A stretch of DNA of 55,498 nucleotides, from the NCBI RefSeq assembly GCF_001194135.2, contig NC_068986.1, positions 109,348,805 through 109,404,302 on the forward strand. Reading direction: 5' to 3'. Made by a program: the position numbers and the translations under genes. The notes under the pieces were generated by a model, which made no database searches, was not told where the DNA came from, and worked only from the letters and a program-made list of their open reading frames with translations. Position 1 is the stretch's first letter. Every line of letters begins with the position of its first letter. Of this stretch, positions 11,527-46,987 are shown one piece after another. The stretch comes from Octopus bimaculoides. Lineage: Eukaryota.

Positions 11527-12172
11527 AGTTCTATATTTAAGAGATGAAGAATTATGGATATTATTTACATTTGACGGATATTTGTTCTCATCTTGTTTGT
11601 TGTTAACACGTTTCGGCTGGTATACCCTCCAGCCTTCATCAGGTGTCTTGGGGAAATTTTGAACCTGGGTTCTCATTCCTAAGGTATTTTTCAATGTTGT
11701 TATTATTATTCTGGTCACTGCCTTGAATTGAACTTGGAATCTTGGGGCTAGTAGCCCACGCTCTTAACTACTATGCCATATGCCCGTGGGCAATTATGGA
11801 GTGAATTTTAGGGTTTATAAATTTAATATCTTTTTTTTTGGGGGGGGGGGGGCTATAAATCTAAAAAAGGATAGGAAAATATTAGATTTATAAGCCCTAA
11901 AATTCACTCCATAATTGCCCACGGGGATATGGCGTAGTGGTTAAGAGCACGGGCTACTAACCCCAAGATTCCGAGTTCAATTCCAAGCAGTGACCTGAAT
12001 AATAATAATAATAGCAATAATAACAACAACAACAACAACAACAACATCGAAAAAAATACCTTAGGAATGAGAACCCAGGTTCGAAATTTCCCCAGGACAC
12101 CTGATGAAGGCTGGAGGTATATCAGCCAAAACGTTGATGACAAATATCCGTCAAATGTAAATAATGTATATG
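11527..12172. mobile_element. Family E locus 1: head-to-head inverted pair of tRNA-headed, hammerhead-bearing units
   Basis: About 300-bp arms; both hammerheads mutated (3-nt deletion; GAAA to AAAA); no clear TSD. Confidence 0.85.
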
Positions 12173-13494
12173 ACACTGGGTAAAACATTCACACCACAAA
12201 CATAAACAAAAGAGGCTCTATTTGGTTGCTTGACCTGTTAGAAATAACAGCAAAACCGCCCTGAAATCATACCCAATTGTCTTTTTAAAACTTTAAAAAA
12301 AGACACATTGGAAAATAGAGCCCGAGATAAAAATAAATAAATAAATAAAGCACAGGTTAATTAAGTTTGGAACAACTTTAATCATAAATCTGTTCAATCA
12401 AGACTGAGCAACAAGAACTATGGAGTTTAAAAACCAATTAGTTACTTGAGATGATAGGGTTTCACACTATCATGTAGTGTATACCATATAAGGTTACACA
12501 ATGCTTCACTGTTCCAAACGAGTTGTGGTGGTGGTGGTGGGGAAGAGGATGTGGTAGTAGAGGTTGGGTGAATAAATGATGATGCAAAATCTAGTTTATA
12601 TTCTTGGATGTGAAAGAGAAATTTATATGTTCCCCAGGGAGACATAGGTTAAACAGGTTTATATGAATTAAAAGAGACATCAATTAGACAGGTTTGTATT
12701 AATTAAAGATATACATTGCTAAGTGGGGAACGGAGGAGGGGTAGTGTTCCAGTTGGCTGAACTTACGTGCAGTTAATTTATCATGGCATCAAATGAAATA
12801 GATTGAATGCAACAAGTAGGGGAAGGATAACTTTGCACAAAGTGAACTTTGTAGCCTAGATTTTCTGTCCAAGATCGGACATCACAGAAATTGCATTTGT
12901 TGGGGTTTTTTTTGGTTTTTTTTGCAGTTTAATAATTGTACCGGTGCCGTGTAAAAAGCACTTGTGCCAGTGCCACAAAGTGTTAATATATTTAATGCAG
13001 TGAGCAGGAAAATGCTAATCAGAAAATAATTACTCCAAGGACAAATATTATTCTAGTTACTTCACAAAAGTACAAGAAACAACTACGAGTGTCTATGTTC
13101 ATCTTATCTGAATTCTCCAGAGAAACAGAGACCTTACAATAATACTTTACCAAAATTATGATGAGAGAATCACTGAATAAAAGCATAATACTGTACACTA
13201 ATTAATATGGAAAATTAATAAATTTCAGATAATTACAGTTGAAAAACTACTCAGAGACACCACTATTTTAGTAGGGGGGGGGTATCTTCTTTTATCCTGA
13301 AATACGTGTATACACCCCTTACCTAGTTTTCTGTCTTCAATCATATTGTTTACATAGACGTATTCTTATACAAAACATCATAACTTTCAGTTCTGGCTCT
13401 GAATTTTACAGAAAATCTGTAGAAATAAACTTAGAAATAATAATGCACGTGATATGATGTGCTTGCGAAGACCTGTTGAGTCAAATGAAATCGA

Positions 13495-13925
13495 AATCAT
13501 AGTCATGGCTAGTGCCACCTGACTGGCACCAGCGCTGGTGGCACATAATAGGCACTATTCGAGTGTGGGTTGATGCTAGTGCCGTCTGACTGGCTCCCCA
13601 TACTGGTGACATGTAAAAAGCACCATGCAAACGTGGTCGATGCTAGTGCCCCCTGATGGGCACCCATGCTGGTGGCATGTAAAAAAAACACCATGTGAAT
13701 GTGGTCAATGCCAGTGCCCCCTGACTGGCTCCTGTGCTGGTGGCACGTGAAATCACCCACTACACCCTCGGAGTGGTTGGTGTTAGGAAGGGCATCTAGC
13801 TGTAGAAACCTTGCCAGATCAGATTGGAGCCTGGTGCAGCCTACTGGCTTGCCAGTCCTTAGTCAAACCGTCCAACCCATGCCAACCATGGAAAGTGGAC
13901 GTTAAGCAACGATGATGATGATGTC
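13495..13925 (+). mobile_element. Family A with about 4-5 tandem hairpin units
   Basis: Repeated gccagtgcc.cctgactggc..ctgtgc.ggtggcac.taaaaagcacc units, then core and gatgatgat tail. Confidence 0.85.
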
Positions 13926-13999
13926 AAGCAGGTGGAAAACACATTTCCAGTTATCCTGGTTTTATTTACAGACACTAATGAAACACTTATCAAATACAC

Positions 14000-14470
14000 A
14001 GTCCATAGGTTGGAATGGTCTGGTTCAGGAGAGCATCACACCAGACTTCTTGTGAAGTTCAACATCCTAAATATCCTAGATTCCAGTCTTCACCATTTCT
14101 TCCCACTGTTCCATAACTCTGCCTCCTTGCCGATTTCCTCAACTCTCACCCTTCACGGAACTCCCAGACCTGCACCTCTTCATAGTCTCCTCTTACACTC
14201 TTCACCAAATTCCTCCCACTCCCAGTTTGTCTCTCAGCTCAGTTTATGTTCCATTGTTCATGGACCCTAACCGTACAAAATCCGGTAGAGCATTCTTACC
14301 GGATTTCTGTCCAACATTTATGCAATAATCACATTTCAGCACACAGGACTCACTGTCATGCAGTATTCCATTTCATACACAAGCATCATACAATCTACCC
14401 TTCATGAGAACACCCTAAACTCTTCCCACTTCACCCTTATTCTGGCTACTATGTGTCCAGCCCACCCACA
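14000..14470 (-). mobile_element. Decayed RTE LINE ORF fragment
   Basis: Reverse frames give KGRLYDACV*NGILHDSE and ELRDKLGVGGI, interrupted by stops. Confidence 0.6.
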
Positions 14471-14828
14471 CACAGCTACTGCCAACACCAGGAAGCCAAC
14501 CCAGGTGCACATGTCGACAGTTGTAATCAGCAACGTGAATTGGTTGGTGACTCAAAGCAGAAGAGAACCATTGGGAAATACACAGCTATTAATCATGGCC
14601 ATATCCCAACGACAATGAGTCAACACTGTGAGAAAGCAATAATTACAAAGACACATTACCATTTCACACAGGCATCAACGATTTCTTTATAAAAGCTCAT
14701 ATAACACTCACGTGTGTGTGTGGATTGGTGGGTAGGGTGTTGCACTTCCAATTGCAAGACTATGGTTTTAATTCCCAGACCAAGTGGTACATTGGGTTCT
14801 TGAGCAAAACACTGTTTCACACTGCTTC

Positions 14829-15090
14829 GTCATCATCATCATCATCATCATCGTTTAACGTCTATTTTCCATGCTGGCATGGGTTGGACAGTTCGACTGG
14901 GGTCTGGGAAGTCAGGAGGCTGCACCAGGTTCTAGTCTGATCTGGCAGTATTTCCCACAGCTGGATGCCCTTCCTAACGCCAACCACTCCAAGAGTGTAG
15001 TGGGTGCTTTTTACATGCCACCAGCACAGAAGCCAGTCAAGGTGACGCTGGCATCGGCCACGTTCGGATGGTGCTTTTTACATGCCACTG
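14829..15090 (-). mobile_element. Family A
   Basis: (CAT)n plus core. Confidence 0.8.
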
Positions 15091-15720
15091 GCACAGGGAT
15101 AACAACCACAATGACCAGTAAGAAGGCTGTCATGATTTAGTGTCCATTCTACACAATACACAAGTTTTCTTTCTCCATCATTAATAACGTATGCTAACAG
15201 ACGCTTATGTTGTACATCTTTTATAGATATGATGCCTTCAGGCCTCTGTAATTCTATGTTGCTTGGCAAGTATCCATTACTGAACAAACAGCTAGACTAC
15301 CATACAACTACACACTCATCATGTACATCATCAACTCACACTCGATTTTCTCTTATATTATCACTAAGATGAAAGGCAAAGTTAACCTCAGTGGGAATTG
15401 AACACAGAATTTACCTCAATACTGCAAAATAGTTTGCTTAGCACCTCACCAAGTCTTCACCTCCCACACACTCTCTCTTTCAAGTGGAGACAACTAATGA
15501 AAAGTCTGATATGTAAAAAATGTGTTGCTACTCTGACAACAACACCTGAAGTTATTCTTATCTTTTACCAGACAGCAAATCACTTAAATTAGTGTGTCGC
15601 TGTTAGCACAGTTTCTGGTCAACTCCATTTTAACAAATGTAGATAATGAGAAGCAGGACAATCACAAATTTAGACGTCATTAGACTCTCTTCCCAACTGG
15701 AAAACTCACATCTTTATAAC

Positions 15721-15873
15721 AAGACTAAGTATTTACATTATTTACATTTGACGGATATTTGTCCTCATCTTGTTTGTTAAGACAATGTTTCAGCTGACAT
15801 ACCCTCCAGCCTTCATCAGGTGTCTTGAGGAAATTTCGAACTTGGGTTCTCATTCCTAAGGCATTTTACGATG

Positions 15874-15912
<39 letters not shown>

Positions 15913-16182
15913 TCACTGCCTGGAATCAAACTCGGAATCTTGGGGTTAGTAGCCCGCGCTCTTAACCACTATGNNNNNNNNNNTATTATTATTATTCAGG
16001 TCACTGCCTGGAATCAAACTCGGAATCTTGGGGTTAGTAGCCCGCGCTCTTAACCACTATGCTATATGCCCATGGAGGGTATATCAGCCAAAACATTGTG
16101 TTAACAAACAAGATGAGGACAAATATCTGTCAAATGTAAATAATTCCTCATCTCTTAAAAATAGAACTGTAAGACTAAGTAT
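15721..16182. mobile_element. Family E locus 2 (inverted structure, 12-bp TSD aagactaagtat)
   Basis: TSD at 15721-15732 and 16171-16182; minus-strand unit followed by a plus-strand tail fragment; includes a 10-N gap. Confidence 0.85.
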
Positions 16183-16494
16183 GATTGCAAACACATAGTA
16201 ACTTCTTGCTGTTGTTGGTTAGTCTTAGGTTCACTTTGAATGAGTAGATCTATAATCAAAGGGACACACCCATGGCTATCATTTCATATTTTCTTGACAT
16301 AGTATATCACAGGATACATAATTCACTACGGCCTTCTTTTATTATCGATAGAGTATTTTTTGAGGGGGAAACTTAGCTACTCTGTTTAGGAGTCTTGACA
16401 ATGTAGTTTCAAATACACAATATTTGAGTGGAAAAAAGGATAAGACTATTGCAAACAGAATTCTTTTGATCATAAATCTGCTCAGCTAGAACTG

Positions 16495-16725
16495 ATCATC
16501 ATCGTCATCATTTAACATCTGCTTTCCATGCATCCATGTGTTGGGCAGATTGACTGAGGACTGGCAAGCCAGTAGGCTGTGCCAGACTCCAATCTGATTT
16601 GGCAAAGTTTCCACAGCTGGATGCCCTTCCTAACGCCAACCACTCCGAGAGTGTAGTGGGTGCTTTTTATGGGCTGCTGGCATGAGGGCCAGTCAGGCAG
16701 CACTGGCATTGGCTATGCTCGAATG
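16495..16725 (-). mobile_element. Family A
   Basis: Core motif plus (CAT)n. Confidence 0.8.
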
Positions 16726-16734
16726 GTGCAAAGA

Positions 16735-17160
16735 GGAAGACTGTCTGTGCAGGGCAAAAGGATCTGGATGACCAATAACATCGGAAGACACGGTAGAACG
16801 GATTCACCAAAAACTCTTGCGAATCCCCAAGAAGTCCATAAGAAGAACAAGTCTGGAAACCCAAATTCCTCCAATGACAGTTTGGTGTGTCCTGAGGAAA
16901 CACTTCCTAATGAAACCCTACAAGATGCAGCCCGTTCAGGCCATAGTGGCAGATGACAAGCGAAAGTGCAAACATGGGGTTGTGAAGGGCCTGGTCTATG
17001 TCCCCCACTCTTCCTGCAAACCTAGAGGAACTCAAGCAGAGAATCACTACCGCACTGGAGACTGTTACCGAAGACATGCTGCAGCGTGTTTGGGAGGAGC
17101 TGGACTACCGACTTGACATGTGCCATGTCTTGTGTGCGCATACTGAACATTTGTGAAATC
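16735..17160 (+). pseudogene. Internally deleted mariner-type transposase relic
   Basis: HTH-region SEDTVERI...PKKSIRRTSLETQIP.MTVW.VLRK...MKPYKMQ fused to C-terminal GVVKGLVYVP, then after a frameshift PANLEELKQRITTALETVTEDMLQRVWEELDYRLD; catalytic DD region absent. Confidence 0.85.
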
Positions 17161-17313
17161 TTTCTTGGAATCCACATACCTCTGAATTTCTCGTTCAAAT
17201 TCGGAGGAATAAATCTTATGTTGCTCAACATTAAGCCTGTTTAGTTTCATTTGCTTTGACTGTGTAGTTTCTGTGATATTTACATCTCAAATGATATATA
17301 TCTTCCAGTGTTT

Positions 17314-17580
17314 CATCATCATCATCATCGTTTAACGTCCGCTTTCCATGCTAGCATGGGTTGGATGATTTGACTGAGGACTGGCAAACCAGATGGCTAC
17401 ACCAGGCTCCAATCTGATCTGGCAGAGTTTCTACAGCTGGATGCCCTTCCTAATGCCAACCACTCTGAGAGTGTAGAGGGTGCTTTTACATGCCACCGGC
17501 ATAAAGGCCAGTCAGGAGGTACTGGCAACGGCCACGCTCAAAATGGTGTATTTTATGTGCCACCTGCACAGGAGCCAGCA
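17314..17580 (-). mobile_element. Family A
   Basis: Near-consensus copy. Confidence 0.85.
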
Positions 17581-18867
17581 AGTGATGGCTATGAGGGCTG
17601 CCTCATGCTCCAGTGTCTGCTTTGACAGGGATTCTATGGCTTGATGCCTTTCCTAAAACCAACCACTTAACTGAGTGCTTTGTTTTGTGACACCTAACAC
17701 TTGTGAGACGACTGCCACACAGCTCACAAGACTAAGATCTCCATTACTGAGAAGGGAGCAGCTTTGTATTAAGGGACAAGAGATTAAAGCAGTTGTCCTC
17801 AACTGATGTCCATATGACCCTTGTAGCAGGGGGGGGGGTCTATATAAGATTTTGCTGTTAAAATTCATGTGCAATAAATTGCTTTTACTTCTTCAATACA
17901 TTTTGATTTTTCTCATACAATTCCTAATATTTAATTATAAAAGTGTAATGTCCATCCTTTGTCAGCACCGTCCAACCCATGCCAGCATGGACAACGGACT
18001 TAAAGGATGATGATTATGATAATAATGATGATGATGATGAATGTCATTTTTTTAAAACAGTGAATGGCTATGATTACCCATCATCATTTAATATCTCTTT
18101 TCTCATGCTGGCATGGGTTGGACAGTTTGACAGGGGCTGGCTAGGCAGAAGACTGCACCATGCTTCCTTGTCTGTTTTGGCAGGGATTTTATAGCCGGAT
18201 GCCCTTCATAACACCAGGGGGTCAACAGGAAAACAATGGCTGAGAATCACTGAGTTTAAAGTGGCAACTCACATTACAAATGAAGAGGAGACGTAAGAGA
18301 TCAGAGTGTTAAGTAGAGCAGTAAGAATAGTTGAGAGGGGGGGGGGGGGGGTAAGGGTGTGTGTGTATTTGATATGTGTGTGATTGGCTGCACGAAAGTG
18401 CAGAGGACAGAGTTGTGGTCAGTGGTGATGAGGTGTCAGGGTGGATGGAGCCTGAATGGATGAGGTGGGGAGGAATATGAATGGAGAACAAAGATTGATG
18501 AATGATCAATGATAAATATAGAGTGGGGGGGAAGGTAGGGAAGGGTGAGTGATGACTGTAGAGATTTGTGGAGACAGAGACGAGTTGGGGTGGGGGGTGT
18601 TGGTGGACGTAGATGGACAGGTGATCGATAATACAAAGAAGTGCAAGGGAGAGACGAAGATCACTGACCGTGCTAAAGAGGGTGAAAAGGGGTAGAATAG
18701 TAACCAAAATCCAGCAGACAGGGAGAGGATGAGAGAGAGAGAGAGAGAGAGGAATGATGGGTGATGGGTGGGTGGGTGGTCAATGTGTATTTGACATGTC
18801 TGTGATGGCATGGATGGAAGTGCAGAGGGCAGTGTTGTCATCAGTTAATCCTGCCAATGAATTATCT

Positions 18868-19100
18868 GGTCGGTGAGCTGGCAGAATTGTTAGCACGTCG
18901 GGCGAAATGCTCAGTGGTATTTCATTTGCCGTTACGTTCTGAGTTCAAATTCCGCCGAGGCTGACTTTGCCTTTCATCCTTTCGGGGTCAATTGAATAAG
19001 TACCGGCTACGCACTGGGGATCGATGTAATCGACTTAATCCCTTTGTCTGTCCTTGTTTGTCCCCTCTATGTTTAACCCCCTGTGGGCAATAAAGAAATA
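18868..19100 (+). mobile_element. tRNA-headed SINE family D with Meta-domain-like core
   Basis: gaggctgactttgcctttcatcctttcggggtc...aataagtacc resembles the MetaSINE/Sauria-SINE central domain as recalled (not aligned). Confidence 0.75.
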
Positions 19101-19110
19101 TAAAAAATTA

Positions 19111-19272
19111 GATGCAGGAGTGGCTGTGTGGTAAGTAGTTTGCTTACCAACCACATGGTTCTGGGTTCAATCCCACTGTGTGACACCTTGGGCAAATGTC
19201 TTCTACTATAGCCTCAGGCCGACCAAAGCCTTGTAAGTGGATTTGGTAGGCGGAAACACAAAGAAACCCGTC

Positions 19273-19306
<34 letters not shown>

Positions 19307-19502
19307 GTGTGTGTGTGTGTGTGTGTGTCTGTGTTTGTACCCCCACCACCGCTTGACAACCGACGGTGGTGTCTACGTCCCCGTAACCTAGCGCTTTGGC
19401 AAAAGAGACCGATAGAATAAGTACTAGGCTCACAAAGAATAAGTCCTGGGGTCAATTTGTTCGACTAAAGGCAGTGTTCCAGTCAAATGACTGGAACAAA
19501 TA
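19111..19502 (+). mobile_element. SINE family B, directly after the A-rich tail of family D
   Basis: gcaggagtggctgtgtggtaagtag... through aaatgactggaac. Confidence 0.85.
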
Positions 19503-19823: not shown

Positions 19824-19962
19824 GGAATTTAGCTACATTTTTTACATTTGGTATATCAGCCGAAAACTTGTGTTAACAAACAAGATGAGGACAAATATTC
19901 CGTCAAATGTAAATAATGTACATAACTCCTCACCTCTTAAATATAGAACTGGGAATTTAGCT
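19824..19962. mobile_element. Family E locus 3 (minimal inverted tail-only insertion, 11-bp TSD ggaatttagct)
   Basis: TSD at 19824-19834 and 19952-19962. Confidence 0.8.
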
Positions 19963-20016
19963 GCTAAAAACATGACACACACCTGTGAGAAAAACTGTTG
20001 ACTTGTTCTCTTACTG

Positions 20017-20760
20017 CATCATCACCATCATCATCGTCGTTTAACGTCCGCTTTCCATGCTAGCATGGGTTGGACGATTTGACTGAGGACTGGTGCAAAC
20101 CGGATGGCAACACCAGGCTCCAATCTAATTTGGCAGAGTTTCTACAGCTGGATGCCCTTCCTAACGCCAACCACTCAGAGAGTGTAGTGGGTGCTTTTAC
20201 GTGTCACCCACATGAAAACGGCCACGCTCGAAATGGTGTCTTTTATGTGCCNNNNNNNNNNNNNNNNNNNNNNNNNNNNNNNNNNNNNNNNNNNNNNNNN
20301 NNNNNNNNNNNNNNNNNNNNNNNNNNNNNNNNNNNNNNNNNNNNNNNNNNNNNNNNNNNNNNNNNNNNNNNNGCATCATCACCATCATCATCGTCGTTTA
20401 ACGTCCGCTTTCCATGCTAGCATGGGTTGGACGATTTGACTGAGGACTGGTGCAAACCGGATGGCAACACCAGGCTCCAATCTAATTTGGCAGAGTTTCT
20501 ACAGCTGGATGCCCTTCCTAACGCCAACCACTCAGAGAGTGTAGTGGGTGCTTTTACGTGTCACCCGCAAGAAGGCCAGTCAGGCGGTACTGGCAACGGC
20601 CACGCTCATCTCGCTCGAGAAACCTCATGTGTCACCCGCACAAGAGCCAGCCCAGGGGCACCAGCAACGATCCCGCTCGAAAATCCCACAACAACCCCAC
20701 ACAAGAGCCAGTTCAGATTAAAGAACACTGCACTCAATCGCTGGGTGCATTGAAGTGTGT
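20017..20760 (-). mobile_element. Family A duplicated across an N-gap
   Basis: Nearly 200 bp identical on both sides of Ns 20252-20372. Confidence 0.8.
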
Positions 20761-20855
20761 CTAACCCAGGAGTAGGAAAAGGCATAACGATGATGACGAA
20801 GATGACGATATACCCTTTGAGTTTAATAAAAGAAATTAATATTTTCATCACTTAC

Positions 20856-21136: not shown

Positions 21137-21171
<35 letters not shown>

Positions 21172-22687: not shown

Positions 22688-23093
22688 CTGTAAAAAATGA
22701 GAAATATAAAATTTAAAGAGATGGAAAAAAGGACATTGATAAATTTAGAGATGAAATCATTCACATCTGACAAGTTAGAGGCAAGGTATACAATATTACA
22801 GCAAATCTGTAGAGAAAATATTTTGTAATGTAGTTTCTGTATGTCACCTTAGTGTCAGGCACTAATAACTTAGTGATGTATAGTACCGCGCAATGGGATA
22901 GACACCAACTGGCTCCACTTAGTGTATTCCTAAATACTCTGTCAACAACTGTAACCAATCCAAAACAACTTTCAACAAACTATAACAACTTCTTGACAAC
23001 TTCCTGTGACTCCATGAACTCATGAACAACAACTTTCAACTTTATTACATTATTTACATTTGACGGATATTTGTCCTCATCTTGTTTGTTGTT

Positions 23094-23139
23094 AACACAA
23101 CGTTTCGGCTGATATACCCTCCAGCCTTCATCAGGTGTC
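23094..23139 (-). ncRNA. Minimal type I hammerhead ribozyme motif (Penelope-like, predicted dimer-dependent)
   Basis: Minus strand reads GACAC-CUGAUGA-a-GGCUG-gagggtatat-CAGCC-GAAA-CG-U-U-GUGUU: helix I 5 bp (one G.U), helix II 5 bp, palindromic AACGUU in place of helix III; activity untested. Confidence 0.65.
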
Positions 23140-23298
23140 TTGGGGAAATTTCGAACCTGGGTTCTCATTCCTAAGGTATTTTTTTATGTTAATATTATTA
23201 TTATTATTATTCAGGTCACTGCCCATGGGCATATAACATAGTGGTTAAGGGCGCGGGCTACGAACCCCAAAATTCCGAGTTTGATTCCAAGCAGTGAT

Positions 23299-23335
<37 letters not shown>

Positions 23336-23487
23336 TTGAAAAATACTTTAGGAATGAGAACCCNNNNNNNNNNNNNNNNNNNNNNNNNNNNNNNNNNNNN
23401 NNNNNNNNNNNNNNNNNNNNNNNNNNNNNNNNNNNNNNNNNNNNNNNNNNNNNNNNNNNNNNNNNNNNNNNNNNNNNNNNNNNNNNN

Positions 23488-23842
23488 GAGGGTTCCAGTT
23501 GATCTGATCAACAGAACAGCCTGCTCATGAAATTAGCGTGCAAGTGGCTGAGCACTCCACAGACACATGTACCCTTAACGTAGTTCTCGAGGATATTCAG
23601 CGTTACACAGTGTGACAAGGCTGACCCTTTGCATTACAGGTACAACAGAAACAGGAAGTAAGAGTGAGAGAAGGTTGTGGTGAAAGAGTACAGCAGGGTT
23701 CGCCACCATCCCCTGCCGGAGCCTCGTGGAGCTTTAAGTGTTTTCGCTCAATAAACATTCACAATGCCCGGTCTGGGAATTGAAACCACGATCCTATGAC
23801 CGCGAATCCGCTGCCCTAACCACTGGGCCATTGCGCCTCCAC
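23488..23842 (-). mobile_element. SINE family C nested in family E locus 4
   Basis: Reverse complement of 36171-36556. Confidence 0.85.
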
Positions 23843-24439
23843 TACTGTCAAATGTAAATCATGTATATAATTCTTCATCTCTTAAATATAGAAGTGTACC
23901 TTTCAACTTCCTGTGATTTCTCATCTCTCCCTCGCAGTCAAACACGCTGCTACTTATATGAGTTCGGCTAGTCCATTCTCACAGGGGGTGTCATGATTCT
24001 TGCCATAACAACATAAGGGATACTTTATGGAGGAGTTAAGTTTGATTCTCAGTCGCAAGGTCCCACGTCTGTCTCACAACACATCACCCCAGACATTTGT
24101 ATCTTTCATCAAAGCCACAGAATGACCCAAGCCTTCAGAAAGTAATTAAATGGAAACTTTACAGAAGCCCATTAAATCAGATGTATCCATAATTCAATGG
24201 ACCAATTTGTCACAGACAGCATCACGCTAATTATGTTTGAAGATATAAATGATGTTGATGATGTATAAGTATTTACAGAACATTCTGGCATCATTTATAT
24301 TACAAACACATTGTGTTGGTCACTCTTTACCATCCTCCATATGGAAATCCCAGTCATCAAAGTTGATGCAAAATCCATTCATTCGAGACTGTACTGCCTG
24401 ATTAGCAGTCATGCCAGTGGAATGTTAAAAGCATATCCA

Positions 24440-25010
24440 AGTATGATCATTGTCAGGGCCGCAGATTGGCCCCTGTGTCGGTGGCATGTAAAAAGCACCA
24501 TTTGAGCGTGATCGTCGATAGCGCCGCCTTACCGGCACATGGAAAACAACATTCGAGCGTGGTCAATGCCAGTGCTGCTAGACTGGTTCCTGTGCTGGTA
24601 GCATGCAAAAAAACACCTTTTGAGCGTGGCCATTGCCAGTACCGTGTGACTGGCCCTCGTACCAGTGGCACATAAAAGCACCCACTACACTCTCAGAGTG
24701 GTTGGCGTTAGGAAAGGCATCCAGCTGTAGAAACATTACCAGATCAGAATGGAGAATGGTGCAGCCTTCTGGCTCGCCAGTCCTCAGTCAAACCGTCCAA
24801 CCCATACCAGCATGGAAAGCGGACGTTAAACGACGATGATGATGATCATCACTTAACGTCCGTTTTCCATGCTGGTATGGGTTGGACGGTTTGAAGGAGC
24901 TGGCAAGGTGGGAGGGCTGCACCAGACTCATTTGTCTGTTTCGGCAGGGTTTCTATGGCTGGGTGCCCTTCCTAACGCCAATCGCTTTACAGAGTGTACT
25001 AAGTGATTTT
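24440..25010. mobile_element. Tail-to-tail family A pair sharing a gatgat/catcat junction
   Basis: Plus copy ends gacgatgatgatgatcatc near 24848; minus copy starts there. Confidence 0.75.
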
Positions 25011-27696: not shown

Positions 27697-27796
27697 ATCT
27701 ATGAAACACAGTTCTATATTTAAGAGATGAGGAATTGTTTACATTTGACGGATATTTGTCCTCATCTAAATGTAAATTATGTAAATCTATAAAACA
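27697..27796. mobile_element. Family E locus 5 (tail-only inverted insertion, 12-bp TSD atctat(g/a)aaaca)
   Basis: TSD at 27697-27708 and 27785-27796 with one mismatch. Confidence 0.7.
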
Positions 27797-30164: not shown

Positions 30165-30706
30165 CTTCATCATCATCATTTAATGTCTGCCTCCTTCCAT
30201 GCTGGCACAGGTCACGATGGTTTGACACAGAACCAACAAGCTGCTGGGATGCGTCAGGCTCCAACGTCATCTTTGGTATGGTTCCTATGGCTTGATGCCT
30301 TTCTTAACACTAATCACTTTACAGAATGTACAGGATATTTTTCTCATGCCACCAACACTAGTGAGGTTGCCATGTAACTTGTGCTGGTGGCACGTTAGAA
30401 AACATTCGAGCGAGGTCGTTGCCAGTGCTGCTGGACTGGTTCCTGTGCAGGTGGCACATAAAAAACACCATTTTGAGTGTGACCGTTGCCAGTACCGTCT
30501 GACCGGCCCTTGTGCCGGTGGCACGTAAATGCACCCTCTACACTCTCGAAGTGGTTGGCGTTAGGAAGAGCATCCAGCTGTAGAAACATTGCCAGATCAG
30601 ATTGGAGCCTGGAGCAGCCACTGGCTCTCCAGACCTCAGTCAAACCGTCCAACCAATATAAGCATGGAAGACGGATGTTAAACAATGACGATGATGATGA
30701 TGATGT
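30165..30706. mobile_element. Family A copies in opposite orientations
   Basis: Old minus copy 30165-30360, younger plus copy 30385-30706. Confidence 0.75.
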
Positions 30707-30880
30707 GGCACATTCTAGCACTGCCCACACAACAATGAACTGAGACAATCTATGATGTTATCTATTTTTTGTTGAATGTGTCTAGCTAGCAACAGTTGAA
30801 AGTCAGTCTTAACAACGGAAGAAAAGCAGCCACCTGAGTGAAGTGTAATTTTGCAATAAACCTTAAGCAGCTGTACTTAC

Positions 30881-32220: not shown

Positions 32221-32790
32221 GGCACAGGTGTGGCTGTGTGGTAAGAAGCTAGCTTCCCAACCACATGGTTCTGGGTTCAGTCCCACTGTGTAGCATCTTG
32301 GGCAAGTGTCTTCTCCTATAGCCTTGGCCCAACCAAAGCTTTGTAAGTGGATTTGGTAAATGGAAACTGAAAGAAGCCCATTGATTATATTTATGTATAT
32401 ATCAATGTATGTGTGTCTGTGTTTGTCCCCTATCACCAATTGACAAATGGTGCTGGTGTGTTTACATCCCTGTAACTTAGTGGTTCAGTAAAAAGAGACC
32501 GATACAATAAGTACCAGCTTAAAAATGTCCTTGGGTCAATTTGTTCAACTGAAACCCTTCAAGGTGGCGCCCCAGCATGGCCACAGTCAAATGACTGAAA
32601 CAATATACACACACACACACATAGACAATGGACTTACTTCAGTTTCCATCTATCAAATCCACTTACAAGGTTTTGGTTAGCCCAGGGTTATACTAGGAGA
32701 CACTTTCTCAAAGTGCCACACAGTGGGACTGAACCCAAGATCACGTGATTGGGAAGGAAGCTTATTACCCACACCGTCACACCTGTGCCT
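32221..32790. mobile_element. SINE family B tail-to-tail pair
   Basis: Plus copy 32221-32605, minus head fragment 32610-32790. Confidence 0.75.
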
Positions 32791-37271: not shown

Positions 37272-37708
37272 ACGGTAGAGATGGACTATATGTAATCTGA
37301 ACCTTTCCCCCCCCTTGTTTTTTGGGGTTTTTTTTACGGAATCCCACGTTTTAGGCTATGGAGATTCCGATTCTGAAAAAATTTTTTCAAAAATCTCAAT
37401 TTCAAAATTTCGATCCCCTCCCCGGTTTTATATAGATCCACAGGGTAAACCTAACCCTAACTCAAACCCTAACCCTGACTCTGACCGTAACCCTAACCCT
37501 AACCCTGACGCTAACCCTAGTTTTGTGAGATTTGGCTGTTATTTCTAGCATGTAAATAGCCTGCTTTGTGGGGGGGGGGGTGAAATTTTTCAAAAAAATT
37601 TTTTTCAGAATCGGAATCTCCATAGCCTAAAACGTGGGATTCCGTAAAAAGAAAATTAATAAATAAGGGGGGAAAAGGTTCAGATTACATATAGTCCATC
37701 TCTACCGT
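37272..37708. mobile_element. Foldback MITE with ~125-bp terminal inverted repeats and internal telomere-like (CCCTAA)n
   Basis: acggtagagatggactatatgtaatctgaacct matches the inverted right end; second block tttacggaatcccacgttttaggctatggagattccgattctgaaaaaa also inverted. Confidence 0.9.
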
Positions 37709-38971: not shown

Positions 38972-39422
38972 CCCAAATACTAATGAGTACGCCGGTCGTC
39001 AAGGTAGCCCAACCTCCGAGCAACAGTAAACCTAACTTCCATGCATTTTTACCGGTCCATCTCGAAGATTTTTCCTTTTTAGATCCTGAAGAAGAACTGG
39101 ACTGTTCTGTAGCCCCATCTTTCGAAGGTGAAGAACCTGAAGCAGCTTTGATATTGGAACTAAGGATGTCGCTTGTGAGGGAACCCAGGTCGGAAGTGCT
39201 TCTACTCCGGACACTTCGACGGTCAGGTGTATCGGCTTCTGTGCTTAAAAGTCGTTTCACATTCTCCAGACGGACACAGAGTGTGTTTAAATCATTACTG
39301 GACATTAAAGTTCTTACGATTGTGCATTTCAAACGCGATTCTGAGGTAAAATGATGAGTCAATATTGGATAGCATAGATTTATCCTCCTTGAAAGACACA
39401 TGTACCTCGTGAAGGCCGCCAT
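38972..39422 (-). CDS. TIMM50: Tim50 coding exon 1 (presequence-like N-terminus, Ser-rich linker, transmembrane segment)
   Basis: ATG at 39422 (MAAFTRYMCLSRR...), Arg-rich N-terminus, hydrophobic stretch AWKLGLLLLGGWATLTTGVLISIWG, donor gtatgt after 38972; 451 nt, phase 1, joins exon 2 in frame. Confidence 0.9.
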
Positions 39423-39530
39423 GTTATTAGTGGTGGGGGAATTGTGGGTAATTATATTACTCCTCCGCCACCGTCACCACCACAACGACGACGACCACCA
39501 CCACCACCGCCACTGCCGGTCTTTTATGTG
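39423..39530 (-). promoter_or_regulatory. Probable TIMM50 5' UTR/promoter-proximal GC-rich (CCA/CGA)n tract
   Basis: Local CpG enrichment just upstream of the ATG in an AT-rich background; no TSS evidence. Confidence 0.4.
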
Positions 39531-39643
39531 GAATTGTTTGAATGAGTGACTTTGGTATCGCAGGAGTTATAACCGAATCTGGATGACTAGCTCTCACAGA
39601 AATTATCATCTATAGACATTAATGAATATATATAAACACACGT

Positions 39644-39678
<35 letters not shown>

Positions 39679-41338
39679 CAAATAAAGGGTAAAGGATTAT
39701 TAATTTATTAATAAATTAATAATTTTTATCAAGTACTTCGGTATGTAAAAACCATTATCGGTAAAGAACTTATTTAAAAGTTCTTTTAAATTTATAAACA
39801 TAATTAAGGGATCAGCAACTGTTGCTTCACCACATACCGAAATTTAGAAATAGCAGTTAAAGTGCTAAAGCTCAACGTTTGATAAGTGCCAACGCACGAA
39901 ACTCTTGGTCCTTGAATCACTTTATTGCTTCTGCTAAATATTAATAAAAAAGTATTTACTTATACTCATTTTTGAATTCTGTTTTTCCCTGTTTGCACCA
40001 TAAAACCTGTTTATGTGTAAACACGCACACACACATACACATGTAAGTCGTTGACCTCGGTGGAATACGAAGGCAGTATATAAAAGAAGGTAACTTAATA
40101 AATAACTCAAGGATTTTGGTCTGTCGCTCCCTTGTTTCTGTCATTCTGTGGGCCTTTTGAACAAAATCATAATTATAATGACAATTTCTAATTTACGAGC
40201 AAAATCCTCAGATTTGGCAGAAAGAGATTGTCGATTACGATCGGTGCCGGTTCCTAGCAGGTATTTATTTTATAGACCCGGGAAATATGAAAGACGAAGT
40301 TGACCTTGACGCGATTTGAAATCAGAACGTAAAGCGGTGTAACAAAACACTACATGATTTCCATTTCTTCAGCGCTCTAATAATTCTACCATTCATCGTC
40401 TTTGACAACGATAAAAAAAAATTCTAATATAAACACAAAACTAAAGGTATATTCCGTAAATTCTAAGGTGACTGGGTGAAAGGTAGGTCGGCCTAGGCAG
40501 GATTTGAACTGACGACTTAAATACCTCTAGGTATTTTGTCTGCCGATCTGCCGAATCTGTTATCCTTTAGGTTTAATAAATAATGATCATTATTGAAGAT
40601 TTTAAGGTTAAACAACGGCCAAACTAAAGGGTTTGACCCGAGCAGAAAAAAAAAAAAATGGTATAATAGGTGTAAAACAACTTGCTGTAAACGAATATAA
40701 AAAAAAATTCGCGAATGGGTGGGTGGGGGAGAGGACTCTGAAAATTCACATCGGCAGACCATGACCTTTAAACTCTAGTGTTTGACCCGAGCAAAAAAAA
40801 AAAATTTTTTAATAGTGTAATAGCTGTACAAGAACATGTCCTTTAAACTCCAGTGTTTGCCCAAGGTGCCATGCAGTGGGACTGTACCAGGAACCGTGTG
40901 GTTGGGAAGAATATCCATTTTCTTTAGGGAAAAAATCGGATCGTGTGAATTGTCCTGTTCCTCCCCCCTCCCACTGTTCGCCAGTAAGCGTTTTCAACCA
41001 TAGTCTCGGGCTGACCAACGCGTCCTGGAGGCCGAAGGTGGCATTTCAGTCTAAAAAATTATCTACGCTATAAACGAAGATGAAAACAAAAATTTGCACA
41101 CATAGTTTCAAAGAACGAAAATATTTAGACACAAACGAATTTTAAATTTTGCAGTGAAAGTAACAGCTTTTGTTGTTCTGGAATTGCTTACAAACATCTT
41201 ACACGCTGCAAATTCTCTTAAATATTCAACCTTATTCTGGCCCCTATTTACAAAACTTTCCATTCTTTTTTATTTTTTTTTTATTTGATTCTTTATACAG
41301 AGAGTTCATGTTAAAATAAATTCTCTTTAACATTCGTA

Positions 41339-41512
41339 GATGTAGGAGTGGCTGTGTGGTAAGTAGCTTGCTTACCAACCACATGGTTCCAGGTTCAGTC
41401 TCAATGCGTGGCAACTTGGGCAAGTGTCTTCTACTATAGTCTCGGGCAGACCAAAGCCTTGTAAGTGGATTTGGTAGACGGAAACTGAAAGAAGCCCGTC
41501 GTATCTCCTTGT
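41339..41512 (+). mobile_element. SINE family B 5' half
   Basis: gtaggagtggctgtgtggtaagtagcttgc...aagaagcccgtcg. Confidence 0.85.
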
Positions 41513-43169
41513 TTCTGTCCTTATTTCTTTCTGTGTTCCCTTCAGTTGAAGAGCATAGCTCGAAACATCAAAGACTTTCTCTATTCCTGAGCGTTAAACT
41601 AATACATCCATTTATTGTTTACACCACCTGTCTTCGTCTGTTGTTTTTTTCGTAAATTCTCCCATGTACATATATATATATGTGTGTATATGTTGACAAT
41701 TCATGCTAGTGTGTTTACGTCCCCGTCACTTAGCAGTTCGGTAAAAGGAACTGATAGAATAAGTACTATGGGTCGATTTGCTCGACTAAAGGCAGTGCAG
41801 AGTAAAGCCACTTGGCACAGGTTGACCTTGATTTCTGCTGTGCATGTGCACTAAGTTATAATGTTCTTGTTCACTTCCGCTTTTTTGCAGCACTGCTTGG
41901 AAGGAAGATGTGTAGCTTGTGATTGTCGCATTGACCATAACAGAGAAAGTTGTCATTGTGTATACATATACATATTCCACTCACCCAATTTTCCCCCTCT
42001 CATGACTTTCTCATCACCCACTCATCTCATTGTCACTGATTCTGCCATCACTTGTCTAATATTGCACAATTCTAAAGCCGTAATTAAATGACAGTAGAAC
42101 TACATACTTCATCATCTTTTTCTATGTTACCAGTTCCCTCTGGCACTGCCAGGAACCACTTCCTTTGTTAGCCATCCTTCATTCTTAACATTGTCCCTCT
42201 CCACTCACATTTTACATTGCTCACCCTTTGTGTTACCAATGATCTCTCCCTCTGTTGACTCACCTTTTACCCTGTGGTTTTCACTCTCCCTATGCACTCT
42301 TGAGAATTACTCACCATCCATCTCTCCTTCAAGGACAAGGAACTAGTTATTTATTTTGCACAAAAGATGGCTTCCACCAGATATGTTTTACAAAACTATG
42401 ATCATTGCTGAAAAGAAAAATAGATTCAAGATGGCATTGATGACTACACATATTCCTCTCACCCTTCATATATGTGTAGTTAGAATGATAGGTTAGCAGT
42501 TGGCAATGATAGAGAGTTGAATTCTTTTAGATTCTTGAGTCAAACACCTATAAAAAAGAGTTGGAATGGATAATGCCATTTTTCTGCCTACAAGACAAAT
42601 TCCCAGTAATTGGCATTTCATTCCCGAGACATTTATCTTGTTTGGTATCACAACCCCTTTTGAGTTACACAATAAATAATATTAATTAAGGAAAATTAAT
42701 GAAATAACATAAAGAAAATTAAAAAATAATATTTCCAGTTTATTTGAAATGTAATAACAAAATGAATTAATGATTATTAGAATATAATTAAAACAAACAT
42801 AATTGATTTAATAAAATGGACAGTGGGTAGAGTTCTTGGCACAGAATAGATAAAGGGAGTTAAAGAAATATATTATGGACAGGCAGTATGCTACATCTAT
42901 TGGTAAATGTGTGTATGTCTATATATTATATATACAAACACACAGACTCTCTCTCTGTTTCTCTCTCGTGCACATACACACACACACACAATATACAAAC
43001 TGAAAGAAACATTACACACAGACGTTAGCTTACATTGACATCTATGTCTGAGTGGCTAATATAGATAAATACATGCATGCACACACACACACATACACAC
43101 AAAGAAGTATGAAACACATACGCATCCACGTTTTAAAGTCTTAGCAAAAATTTGTGCCTTCAGTAGATA

Positions 43170-43722
43170 CAGGGCGAGGCATAAAGATCTTCCACATTTG
43201 AAGGAGACATCTTGTGGACGTAAACAGAAGTAGAGAGGTGAGACAGGTTTCATTTGGAAGGCTAAGATCTACCATTTTTGAAATAACTATTAATCACTCG
43301 AAAACTTCTTTCCTTTTTTAGGTTCTACCATTTTTTTGTATTCATCATTAACTATTCAAATACTTTGAGGGAGGCTGGTAAGGTCACCAGATTTAAGCCC
43401 TTGTGACTTTTTCCTTTGGGGATACATAAAGGAAACAGTTCTTCAACATTGTCCTTGAACTTTTGAGGATTTGAAAGAAAGGATTTGTGAGGAAATCAAT
43501 ACAAAACCACCTGAGACATAGAGTCTTGGAGAACTTCTGGGAACAACAGCATCAATTTATTTCCAACAATGGCAACTATTTGCCTAATATAGTTTAGTTT
43601 TTAAAACCCAGTAAAATAAACTGTTTTTTATGTACTTTTCAGAAACATAATTTTTTTCCTAGATGGTTGTGTTCTCTTTTTGTATTCATTTACAATGTGG
43701 GAGATCTTTATACCCCACCCTG
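43170..43722 (+). mobile_element. Non-autonomous mariner-type element, 553 bp, ~29-bp TIRs, TA TSD
   Basis: ta|cagggcgaggcataaagatcttccacatt ... aatgtgggagatctttataccccaccctg|ta; internal RSPDLSPCDFFLWGYIK at 43381-43430. Confidence 0.9.
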
Positions 43723-43845
43723 TATATCTTGTGCAAGGGTGAAAGTTGTAAATATATGTTTGTGTGTGTATGTGATTAATTGCAGGTGTATATACACACT
43801 CACACACTCATATACACATATATATAACCATTTGTCTTAACATCC

Positions 43846-44155
43846 CTATTGTATTCCTGTGAAACTTGGACTTGTTATGAAAGGTATTTTAAACAGTTAG
43901 AACAATTCCACCAAAAATGCCTTCGTGATATTTTAAAAATTAAATGGAATTCTTTTACTCCAAACACAGATATCCTTGCATCTGCAGGCATCCCCTCAAT
44001 TAAAGCCATGATTCTGAGGAACCAATATACTACAAACGATCGTGATATCTGAGACAATAAAAATTTACAAGACTTTCTTAAGATTAAGAGGATGATAAAC
44101 AAAGCAAGATGCTTTTTTTCACAACCTTGCTACCAAGAAGCGGGGCAGTCAAGAT
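43846..44155 (+). mobile_element. RTE-clade (BovB-like) LINE RT C-terminal fragment
   Basis: LLYSCETWTCYERYFKQLEQFHQKCLRDILKIKW...NTDILASAGIPSIKAMIL. Confidence 0.85.
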
Positions 44156-44294
44156 TTACATACATACATATATACATACATACATACAAGCACAGCATAT
44201 AATCAAAAGGTACACACAGGCTTCAAGTATGTATCGTTCTTGTCCTAATTTTATTTTGCCTCTTACTCTACTTTGATAAAGGGTTCGTCTAAAA

Positions 44295-44520
44295 CAGGGG
44301 TTCTCAACTGGAGTCCATATGGACCCCAGTGGTCCATATAAGTTATTAGTGTGGGAGGGTTTCCACACATGATAAATTGAGGACCCATGGTAATTTTTCA
44401 GGAACCAAGTAAATATTTTCACAATTTTTATGCAATTCTTAATAATATTTAATCATAAAAAATACTAAAAGATTTTCTAAACATTGGATGGCTATGAGGG
44501 TCCAACCAAGTAAAATAGGA
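44295..44520 (+). mobile_element. hAT-type non-autonomous element left end
   Basis: Starts caggggttctcaac; related fragment near 17810-17940. Confidence 0.5.
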
Positions 44521-44549
44521 ATTAACTGTAAACCTATTTTTGGGCCACC

Positions 44550-44580
<31 letters not shown>

Positions 44581-46149
44581 ACGTGAGAGAGTTAGGGGTT
44601 GGGGGTTCAACCCACTAAGGGATAGTATCTATCCAGTATACTGCTGGGAGGGTACCCAATTATTGCTACACTAGTGCTATACTAGGTGCAATCAATGGGA
44701 GCGGGTAAAAGTGGAGGTTTTATATATATATATATATATGTCTCGGAGTGGTTGGTGTTAGGAAGGGCATCCAGCTGTAGAAACTCTGCCAGATCAGATC
44801 TGGTTCGCCAGTCCTCAGTCAAATCGTCCAACCAATGCTAGCATGGAAAGCGGACGTTAAATGATGATGATGATGTCTTCGACAGGCGAGTCCATCATAT
44901 ATATGTGTGTGTGTGTGTGTATACACAGACAGACAGACAGACAGGCAGACACACACATGTAAGGAATCAATTATTATTATATATCAGATTGAAATATATA
45001 TATGTTAGAGATGGATGTAGTTTGCTCTACATCAGGTTTTCCAATGTGTATTTGTTTAATAGTTAGAATTTATAGCAAAGCTTAGGATGTGATGTCGAAG
45101 TGTATGGGTTATTGAAATGTTGATGGTGAAGAGATTTTATATTAATCAAAATGAATAAAGTGGGGGTACCAGTTGGAGAGGGGATTGAAGTTTTTGTGTG
45201 AGTTGTAAAGCAAAAGACAAATGGTAATCAGAATAACAGAGTAACAGACAAAGAAAGAAAAGAAAACTTAGAAATAGTTTGGAAAATGATAAAGAACAAA
45301 GAATTTAGTTCTTAACAGAAAGAGTGGGGAGAGGGGGTAAGGAAGTTATGTTACTGGCATTGTAGTGGTGGTGGTGGTGGTGGTGGTGGTGGTGGAGTAC
45401 TTAGCTCCAAATAAAAGTGTGAATGGCTACAGAAAGGTTGCAATNNNNNNNNNNNNNNNNNNNNNNNNNNNNNNNNNNNNNNNNNNNNNNNNNNNNNNNN
45501 NNNNNNNNNNNNNNNNNNNNNNNNNNNNNNNNNNNNNNNNNNNNNNNNNNNNNNNNNNNNGGGGTATGGGGCATGTGTGAAAGGGTATCAAGATGATAAC
45601 TATAAAGGTTAAAGACTGCTTTTGGTATTCTTACAAAAATGTGAAATTTACAGAAAATTTAGGAAACCTAATATATAGAAAATAATATCAATGAAGTAAG
45701 CAACTTAACGACCCCTGGGTTTGAGTATAAAAATTGGATTCTAGATATATTTTTTATTATTAACGAATATATATTTGATAAATGTATTATATCAATAATA
45801 CAATAATATATTATGTCAATAATGAATGTATATTTATTATTAATAAACATGGGTATGAGTATAATAACAGCATCTCTCTGCCAAGTCGTGTTGAGCCAGT
45901 GTGATAGATTAGGCTCATCAAACCAGCGTGATCGCAAGCTCAAATTCATGGCCTGCACATCAAACCATGGTTGGTGGGGAGAGAATGCTGAGGCGGTCAT
46001 CTTGAATGAGCATGGGACAATCCAAGTCCAAAATATCAATGTTTTGAAATACAATGACCAGAAAAGATAAACAATAAAAATCCTTAAGTTATTAAAAGAT
46101 AAATAATATAAAGTATATTTAAGAACTGATGTATGGTTACATTTGGCAC

Positions 46150-46560
46150 ATTTCAAAGGCAGAATTGTTAGCATGCTGGGTGTAATGCTAAGCAGTATTT
46201 CATTTGTCACTACATCCTGAGTTCAAATTCTGCCAAGGTCGACCTTTGCCTTTCATCCGTTTGGGATCGGTAAATTAAGTACCAGTTGCATACTGGGGTT
46301 GATCTAATTGACTGCCCCCCCCCCTCCCACTCCTAACTTCGGTCCTTGTGCCTAGAGTAGAAAAGAATATTTTAAAGGTGGTGAGCCAGCAGAAACGTTA
46401 GCAGGCCAGGCGAAATGCTTAGTGGCATTTCGTCTGTCGTTACGTTCTGAGTTCAAATTCAGCTGAGGTTGAGTTTGCCTTTCTTCCTTTCGGGATCGAT
46501 AAATTAAGTACCAGTTGCATACTGGGGTAGATCTAATTGACTGGCCCCCCTCCCACTCCT
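46150..46560 (+). mobile_element. Two tandem SINE family D copies
   Basis: Heads near 46160 and 46378, both ending actgg/gccccccctcccactcctaac. Confidence 0.8.
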
Positions 46561-46579
46561 AACTACTGAGAGTAACTTC

Positions 46580-46761
46580 TAACTTCTAGTTCTGTATTTA
46601 AGAGATGAGGAATTATGTACATTATTTACATTATTTACATTTGACAGATATTTGTCCTCATCTTGTTTGTTGTTAACACAACGTTTCGGTTGATATACCT
46701 TCCAGCTTTCATCAGGTGTCTTGGGGAAATTTCGAATCTGGGTTCTCATTCAATGTTGTTG

Positions 46762-46800
<39 letters not shown>

Positions 46801-46987
46801 TTACTGCCTGGAATCGAACTCAGAATCTTGGGGTTAGTAGCCCTGTGCTCTTAATCACTATGCCATATGCCCAAGACACCTGATGAAGGCTGGAGGGTAT
46901 ATCAGCCGAAACGTTGTGTTAACAACAAACAAGATGACAAATATCTGTCAAATGTAAATAATGTAAATAATGTTTTAACTTCTAGTT
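46580..46987. mobile_element. Family E locus 6 (inverted structure, 12-bp TSD taacttctagtt)
   Basis: TSD at 46580-46591 and 46976-46987; the plus arm starts just before the hammerhead. Confidence 0.85.
46875..46920 (+). ncRNA. Minimal type I hammerhead ribozyme motif (second intact copy)
   Basis: gacac ctgatga a ggctg gagggtatat cagcc gaaa cg t t gtgtt, identical to the 23094-23139 copy. Confidence 0.65.

Follow-up and report, generated by a model that had tools for sequence, protein, structure and literature searches.

Insertions of Penelope-like elements (PLEs) frequently contain an inverted, 5'-truncated copy, and a tail of 30-40 bp is often present at one end only, features that the authors ascribed to unresolved aspects of the transposition cycle (PMC8557442). 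PLEs of Adineta vaga have a 31-bp tail, target-site duplications (TSDs) of 8-10 bp and head-to-head inverted repeats (PMC3846280). For a PLE of Anolis, the purified protein was shown to cleave both strands of the target and to extend them, with reverse transcription starting at two adjacent internal sites, the tail corresponding to the sequence between them and a hammerhead lying upstream; uncleaved RNA was reported as the main template for the protein (PMC11167929). In Schistosoma, pairs of minimal hammerhead ribozymes (min-HHRs) lie 100-700 bp apart on opposite strands (PMC4209133), and octopus genomes contain recently active PLE families as well as hundreds of families of short interspersed elements (SINEs) designated 'Unclassified SINE' (PMC13282606). 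Here we describe family E, a SINE-like element sampled as six copies within one 55-kb window of Octopus bimaculoides DNA (the whole stretch analyzed, 55,498 nt of contig NC_068986.1, to which all positions refer unless another contig is named). Our results support the presence of a known Penelope-type insertion signature in an unusual carrier, a short, tRNA-like element bearing a putative hammerhead.

Six inverted insertions in one window

Copies were detected by blastn with a single arm as query and by three motif searches, independently of an earlier note on this DNA that had listed six loci. Family E was found at exactly these six loci, and none of the six was a plain single-orientation copy in the window. 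The 25-mer that marks the complete end, TCCTCATCTCTTAAATATAGAACTG, occurred six times without mismatch, once per locus, against a chance expectation of 0. The inner motif GTCAAATGTAAATAATGT was present twice per locus, with 11 sites matching at up to 3 mismatches and the twelfth, a diverged CTAAATGTAAATTATGTA at 27767-27784, lying beyond that limit; the core motif was found in five arms. At all six loci the left arm is reverse-complemented and starts with the 3' end of the element, and the right arm is in forward orientation and finishes with it. The loci, their TSDs and the extra tails are as follows.

Locus 1, 11526 to 12168: left arm reverse-complement with its complete end at 11526; right arm forward with its short end at about 12168.
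Locus 2, 15733 to 16169: left arm short-ended and full length to the 5' end of the head; right arm from within the hammerhead motif to the complete end.
TSD of locus 2: left copy AAGACTAAGTAT at 15721-15732; right copy at 16171-16182, after one extra T; 12/12 identical.
Locus 3, 19835 to 19951: short-end arm of 16-17 nt joined at 19850/19851 to a complete-end arm of 100 nt.
TSD of locus 3: left copy GGAATTTAGCT at 19824-19834; right copy at 19952-19962; 11/11 identical.
Locus 4, 23043 to 23896: left arm short-ended and 5'-truncated; right arm from the 5' end of the head to the complete end.
TSD of locus 4: left copy CTTTCAACTT at 23033-23042; right copy at 23900-23909, after 3 extra bases (TAC); 10/10 identical, 11/12 when extended.
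Locus 5, 27709 to 27784 (76 bp): complete-end arm of 59 nt joined near 27767/27768 to a short-end arm of 17 nt.
TSD of locus 5: left copy ATCTATGAAACA at 27697-27708; right copy at 27785-27796; 11/12 identical, one mismatch.
Locus 6, 46587 to 46975: left arm complete-ended and full length to the 5' end of the head; right arm from just before the hammerhead motif to the short end.
TSD of locus 6: left copy TAACTTCTAGTT at 46580-46591; right copy at 46976-46987; 12/12 identical, 14/15 when extended.
Last 25 nt of the 31-nt extra tail: 16145 to 16169 (plus), 11526-11550 (minus), 19927-19951 (plus), 23872-23896 (plus), 27709-27733 (minus) and 46587-46611 (minus).

Alignment of all arms showed that, without exception (6/6), a complete 3' end is paired at each locus with an end that falls short by about 31 nt (±3 nt). 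Loci 1, 5 and 6 have their complete end at the left, loci 2, 3 and 4 at the right. Short ends terminate in ...AATGT, GTA, GTAA, GTAATA or GTT, all within about 3 nt of a single point, and at several ends 1-3 extra bases separate the element from the TSD. If the start point were chosen independently at each end, mixed ends at all six loci would have a probability of at most 0.5^6 = 0.016. The element terminates in ...TTAAATATAGAACTG, with neither an A-tail nor a short repeat. The complete tails of loci 2 and 5 (16141-16146 and 27733-27738) do not contain the 9 nt GTACATAAT, a segment flanked by two direct repeats of ATAAT and situated exactly at the inner start point; its absence could be either a subfamily marker or a template slip between start sites.

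TSDs were searched for within ±6 nt of each pair of ends with one mismatch tolerated. At five of the six loci a TSD of 10-12 bp brackets the entire inverted pair and adjoins both outward 3' ends (lengths 10, 11, 12, 12 and 12 bp, or up to 15 bp with one mismatch; 64-75% A+T). A score of at least 10 was reached by 11 of 3000 random position pairs with spacings as in the real loci. At locus 6 the left TSD overlaps the last 5 nt of the tail, a microhomology of 4-5 nt between target and tail. Because each TSD surrounds the whole pair, two separate SINE insertions cannot account for these five loci. We consider it barely credible that family E represents chance pairs of SINEs inserted in opposite orientations or palindromic assembly artefacts. 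At 32229-32780 another abundant SINE does lie paired by chance, tail to tail, assembly gaps interrupt two of the loci and the T9G13 centre of locus 1 is suspicious; against this, the TSDs surround the pair and not single copies, the rule of one complete and one short end holds in 6/6 loci, and loci 3 (117 bp) and 5 (76 bp) are free of gaps.

The gaps themselves are limited in effect. Locus 2 contains a 10-N gap (15974-15983) with an exact 78-nt duplicate on each side, indicating redundant contig ends and therefore a true size of about 349 bp with the structure unaffected. Locus 4 spans 854 bp including a 124-N gap (23364-23487). Its right arm is broken by this gap and by a nested SINE, and resumes at 23847 with its orientation unchanged; the gap hides about 50 nt of arm sequence together with one of the junctions of the nested SINE. 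Gaps at 20252-20372 and 45445-45560 fall between loci and leave the finding unaffected.

23488 to 23846, minus strand: unrelated SINE of the tRNA type that sits nested within the right arm of locus 4, with its other junction lying in the gap.

Locus 1 is a nearly complete palindrome in which both arms traverse the tRNA-like head and a further ~43 nt seen in no other copy. At its centre (11833-11875) is a 43-nt spacer consisting of T9 G13 followed by a partial third copy of the adjoining sequence (GGGCTATAAATCTAAAAA). The T9 G13 run may be an artefact of sequencing or assembling a hairpin, or may reflect untemplated synthesis.

Most of what the earlier note had said of these structures was borne out by the blastn, motif and alignment results: the six asymmetric inverted loci with one end about 30 nt shorter, the 10-12 bp TSDs at five loci with none at locus 1, and an internal junction that varies between loci. 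Its start of locus 1 at 11527 is corrected here to 11526, and of its size range of about 90 to about 650 bp the upper end stands (locus 1) while the lower end falls to the 76 bp of locus 5.

Inner junctions, tRNA-like head and a candidate hammerhead

Family E is about 270 nt long and consists of a tRNA-like head, an (AAT)n/(AAC)n stretch, and a body with the core, leading to ...GTCAAATGTAAATAATGTA and then to the 31 nt CATAATTCCTCATCTCTTAAATATAGAACTG. Within it, the module from hammerhead to tail reads ...CUGAUGA...GAAACGUU...GUCAAAUGUAAAUAAUGUA followed by the 31 nt. A 9-bp stem, AGAUGAGGA/UCCUCAUCU, places the inner start point in a loop (in the consensus; for example 23049-23090, with the tail as at 19927-19935), although it has no covariation support and a chance expectation of about 0.05. 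In the head, box A (TAGCATAGTGG-type) agrees with the consensus at 11/11 positions and box B (AGTTYGATTCC) at 10/11, with a spacing of about 33 nt. ARAGORN found no tRNA in the window at default settings and gave a cloverleaf at relaxed thresholds only, with anticodon ACG (Arg) in the locus 4 copy and ACT in the consensus. Given this and the silence of the Rfam tRNA model, we call the head tRNA-like rather than a proven tRNA derivative. Heads were located as follows.

23231 to 23299, plus strand: tRNA-like head, locus 4.
11713 to 11781, minus strand: tRNA-like head, locus 1.
11927 to 11995, plus strand: tRNA-like head, locus 1.
15999 to 16067, minus strand: tRNA-like head, locus 2.
46799 to 46868, minus strand: tRNA-like head, locus 6.

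We examined where the two arms meet. In the numbering of a 334-nt reference, the inner junctions of loci 2-6 join unequal positions (~72|230, 285|235, 139|69, 268|284 and 76|209), with microhomology of TGG, G, GCC, 1-2 nt and CCC, respectively; the junctions of loci 2, 4 and 6 lie at 16075/16076, 23223/23224 and 46872/46873. Both arms begin at the 3' module, and they overlap by 17 to ~270 nt. A snap-back hairpin was rejected as the source of the pairs, as it would join a position x to itself. In twin priming of L1 elements, a second cDNA is primed by the other target strand and becomes joined to the first at microhomology, leaving an inversion inside one TSD; this second primer anneals internally, at random, on the RNA that is already being copied, so that the arms do not overlap. 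Twin priming of this type on a single RNA was likewise rejected, given the arm overlap.

In loci 2, 4 and 6 the long arm runs to the 5' edge of the head, about 10 nt upstream of box A, with stops that differ by no more than about 8 nt. Three of five loci would end in one 8-nt window with a probability that we estimate to be of the order of 10^-3 if breakpoints were random over ~300 nt. This shared stop is where a transcript made by RNA polymerase III (pol III) would be predicted to begin.

These end points also bear on whether the loci descend from a DNA transposon of the foldback type or a miniature inverted-repeat transposable element (MITE), in which a palindromic master resembling locus 1 would have been cut and pasted and the shorter loci would be internal deletions from abortive gap repair. 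Such a history would fit with the retention of both termini in all copies while the interiors differ, with the nearly complete palindrome of locus 1, with the junction microhomology of 1-3 nt, which abortive gap repair also leaves, and with the presence in the window of other MITE-like elements or elements with terminal inverted repeats. It fits poorly with a terminus that is 31 nt longer than its partner, with a short terminus that is ragged by ±3 nt and carries extra bases, and with a TSD length that varies from 10 to 12 bp or more. Nor would it lead one to expect pol III boxes and a ribozyme motif within the element, or three end points coinciding at the predicted transcript start, though locus 1 reaches 43 nt past that point. 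We therefore regard a foldback or MITE origin as improbable.

The core of the element reads GACAC-CUGAUGA-A-GGCUGG(loop)UCAGCC-GAAA-CG-U-U^GUGUU. The conserved boxes are present, A9 and 10.1 are separated by one unpaired base, helix II (6 bp) is closed by a G10.1-C11.1 pair, helix I has 5 bp, and U16.1 and a permitted H17 are in place; the palindromic positions 15.2/16.2 mean that ACGU could form helix III only between two molecules. This set of features is the one listed for the min-HHRs of metazoan Penelope-like elements by Cervera and de la Peña (PMC4209133). From that source we composed, after the core sequence had been seen, a descriptor specifying 4-5 bp in helix I, one unpaired base following A9, the G10.1-C11.1 pair, a long helix II and palindromic 15.2/16.2. 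In the window the descriptor matched family E alone, in two intact arms, and it also matched the consensus; it matched in 0/300 dinucleotide shuffles on both strands.

23094 to 23139, minus strand: intact minimal hammerhead motif, by descriptor.
46875 to 46920, plus strand: intact minimal hammerhead motif, by descriptor; identical in sequence to the copy at 23094..23139.

The minimum free energy fold of the core forms helices I and II. On sequence grounds, the family-E consensus thus appears to carry a minimal hammerhead of the Penelope type, a candidate ribozyme. The predicted cut would precede the inner end point by 53 nt and the outer one by 84 nt; none of the arms starts at this cut, in agreement with uncleaved RNA being the main template (PMC11167929). 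Rfam searches at a relaxed cut-off returned only palindrome-driven, miRNA-like noise.

Scans of genome contigs and viral contigs gave 0 matches to the hammerhead core, and a metagenome scan for the tail pattern gave six chance 20-mers only. Loci L001, L002 and L009-L011, which were reached from protein matches to the host exons (at most 72% identity), contained neither family E nor a min-HHR, except for a decayed, related core in L001. There, a SINE-like element at 7812-7898 of contig ctg85040l (ENA metagenome assembly ERZ21867824) has 76% identity to the family-E core over the stretch that runs from GTTCGAAATT to AAGATGARGACAAT and includes the hammerhead region, with CUGAUGA decayed to CUGAAUA. 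This likeness suggests that the family-E core is a conserved SINE domain.

An alternative is that a reverse transcriptase of another kind, such as that of a long interspersed element (LINE) partner with stringent 3' recognition, mobilized family E, with the inverted pairs arising from a side reaction resembling twin priming and the hammerhead-like motif unrelated to mobilization. Several features of family E (its tRNA-like head, its TSDs, the truncation of 5' ends and the microhomology at junctions) are indeed generic to target-primed reverse transcription, and most SINE families of octopus lack an assigned partner, in genomes where LINEs are abundant (PMC13282606). We nonetheless judge this explanation unlikely, if somewhat less so than the MITE origin. 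Twin priming yields non-overlapping arms with a random inner priming site, whereas family E has overlapping arms and fixed outer ends; it is a minority outcome for LINE and SINE insertions, whereas here 6/6 are inverted. Family E also lacks the A-tail or short 3' repeat, and its one-sided 31-nt tail and min-HHR motif are PLE signatures.

A probable Penelope-type route of mobilization

We favor the view that family E is a non-autonomous, SINE-like passenger that was probably mobilized in trans by a PLE reverse transcriptase with its GIY-YIG endonuclease, primed on both target strands. We infer which enzyme acted, that two RNA templates were used, in which order events took place and why the two ends always differ. 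In this model, the PLE enzyme would make a staggered double-strand cut with nicks 10-12 bp apart, and both exposed 3'-OH ends would prime cDNA synthesis on element RNA, whose 3' module would hold two start points 31 nt apart; one end would be primed at the outer and the other at the inner point. Each cDNA would extend toward the 5' end of its RNA, reaching it or halting early, and the two cDNA ends would be joined via 1-3 nt of microhomology. Fill-in would then duplicate the stagger, giving a tails-out, heads-in inverted pair inside one TSD. Priming from both 3'-OH ends of a 5'-staggered cut would account for the orientation of the arms relative to the TSD copies, and two-sided priming predicts every structural feature seen. 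An asymmetric dimeric ribonucleoprotein possibly underlies the rule of one end of each kind.

This view bears on what the earlier note had proposed. Its statement that PLE insertions carry inverted truncated copies plus a short tail is confirmed in the literature (PMC8557442, PMC3846280, PMC11167929). Its reading of each locus as a single insertion event and not two SINEs gains support from the TSDs that bracket the pair in 5/6 loci, and its preference for reverse transcription over a MITE is supported by ends that differ by 31 nt, by a short end that is ragged, by TSDs of variable length and by the arms ending at the edge of the head. The stereotyped inversion step that it envisaged holds for the two outer start points and fails for the inversion point, which varies, so that each locus is more aptly seen as a pair of cDNAs, one primed from each strand.

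Several observations weigh against a Penelope-type origin or against parts of it. No PLE open reading frame (ORF) was found among the window ORFs of at least 110 aa, and the six loci contain no direct tandem or pseudo-long terminal repeat (pseudo-LTR) copy of the element, the commonest PLE arrangement. Locus 1 has no TSD within ±6 nt with one mismatch allowed, and its extra 5' sequence is not expected in a pol III transcript. The hammerhead motif is intact in 2/6 spanning arms, the other four having single changes each, several at CpG sites. Rfam hammerhead models, which require helix III, gave no match at gathering thresholds or at E<=10 in whole or narrow windows, so that the evidence for the motif is our own descriptor, designed post hoc; the Rfam tRNA model also gave no match, narrow windows included. 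Evidence that the two arms of a locus come from the same source is limited to the private 9-nt duplication GTAAATAAT common to both arms of locus 6 and the private ~43-nt extension in both arms of locus 1. Locus 6 excepted, arm-to-arm distances within loci are not below those between loci, and this lack of clustering is as expected for old copies. At loci 2 and 5 the complete arm is without GTACATAAT and yet the short arm ends in GTAA, so that their arms may not derive from identical templates. Finally, Frangieh et al. found start-site use to be alike on both strands (PMC11167929), and such equal use in vitro leaves the strict one-of-each rule without explanation from those data.

A more specific proposal, which we advance tentatively and with less confidence than the passenger model itself, is that family E is a pol III-driven SINE that parasitizes PLEs through one outer and one inner start site, both obligatory, each insertion preserving a full record of two-sided target-primed reverse transcription, and that the SINE core shared with L001 is a minimal hammerhead. 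We found no literature linking a tRNA-headed SINE to PLE mobilization, named families of Repbase, Dfam and SINEBase being outside the comparison, and literature string searches for the core sequence returned primers only.

Neighboring sequences and comparison with known systems

Translation of the 3' module gave matches to two proteins of Octopus bimaculoides, one at 90% identity and the other at the predicted first exon of a dystrobrevin-beta isoform. The predicted N-terminus MPMGIWHSGEGWRVYQPKCCVNNKQDEDKYPSK of the latter (P0047, dystrobrevin beta isoform X1) is a translated family-E copy with the 5' end of the head joined to the 3' module, and family E thus appears to supply an alternative first exon in this gene model. 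A 20-kb Octopus vulgaris locus, reached via a chimeric repeat-peptide query, contained no family-E copy.

The window contains other repeats. At 32229-32780 two CORE-type tRNA SINE copies lie tail to tail with their heads outward and (CA)n between them, a geometry opposite to that of family E; this pair looks like two independent insertions. At 37280-37700 terminal inverted repeats of about 100 nt (…GGACTATATGTAATCTGAACC…) surround degenerate telomere-like CCCTAA repeats and poly-G/poly-C runs. A palindromic, MITE-like element at 812-1178 has termini GTAGAAGTGAGTTGAGTCCCAGTGCC and an internal motif GGGCATCCAGCTGTAGAAA, and ORF-like sequence related to it is found at ~4229-5078, 20070-20420 and 30395-30748. 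A near-perfect hairpin of 112 nt at 24785-24896, scoring 61 bits against the plant MIR4374 model, below the family threshold, is probably another small inverted repeat. On the minus strand at 48221-53964, three long open exons encode a coiled-coil protein whose best relatives, at 72% identity, are on metagenome/Logan contigs; Pfam was uninformative on the host ORFs. Loci 1-6 lie upstream of or between host genes, outside the coiled-coil exons.

For PLE integration, published in vitro work shows cleavage and extension of both strands from two start sites and leaves the later steps unvalidated. Family E would offer whole insertion events of 76-650 bp in which junctions, TSD, start points and the cDNA joint could be read in one sequencing read. 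If the proposed route is true, the SINE concept would extend to a third class of partner. If the core shared with L001 is indeed a minimal hammerhead, one or more of the 'highly conserved domains' known from invertebrate SINEs would gain a function. Family E would also help to classify some of the 'unclassified' octopus SINE families. Inverted pairs, when transcribed, form long hairpins, which is relevant to studies of double-stranded RNA and RNA editing in cephalopods.

Among described systems, family E most resembles PLEs (Penelope/Poseidon, Neptune, Naiad) and their non-autonomous derivatives (solo or inverted pseudo-LTR units, MRC1 of Chlamydomonas, non-LTR retrozymes), with which it shares the head-to-head inverted 5'-truncated copy, a tail at one end only (30-40 bp in PLEs, 31 nt in family E), a short variable TSD and 5' truncation, together with a candidate minimal type-I hammerhead motif upstream of the start points of reverse transcription. 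It differs from PLEs in having no ORF and no direct pseudo-LTR or tandem copy, in the replacement of the pseudo-LTR promoter by a tRNA-like pol III head, and in the presence of the inversion and mixed ends in every copy, features that are frequent or optional in PLEs. Animal non-LTR retrozymes consist of tandem head-to-tail hammerhead repeats that give rise to circular RNA, whereas family E has no tandem copies. The schistosome elements Sm-alpha and Sj-alpha, short and SINE-like with a pol III-type organization as well, carry a hammerhead, but theirs is canonical and they lie largely in tandem arrays, in contrast to the candidate minimal, dimer-type motif and the dispersed inverted pairs with TSDs of family E. 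In contrast to L1 twin priming, both cDNAs of family E start at fixed 3' sites, and the two arms contain the same sequence in duplicate. With the octopus tRNA-derived SINEs (OK, OR1, OR2; CORE-SINEs) it has in common the A/B-box head, an internal simple repeat, TSDs and the host lineage, but it is unrelated in sequence to the CORE-type SINE at 32229-32600 and has neither a CORE domain nor an A-rich or repeat tail.

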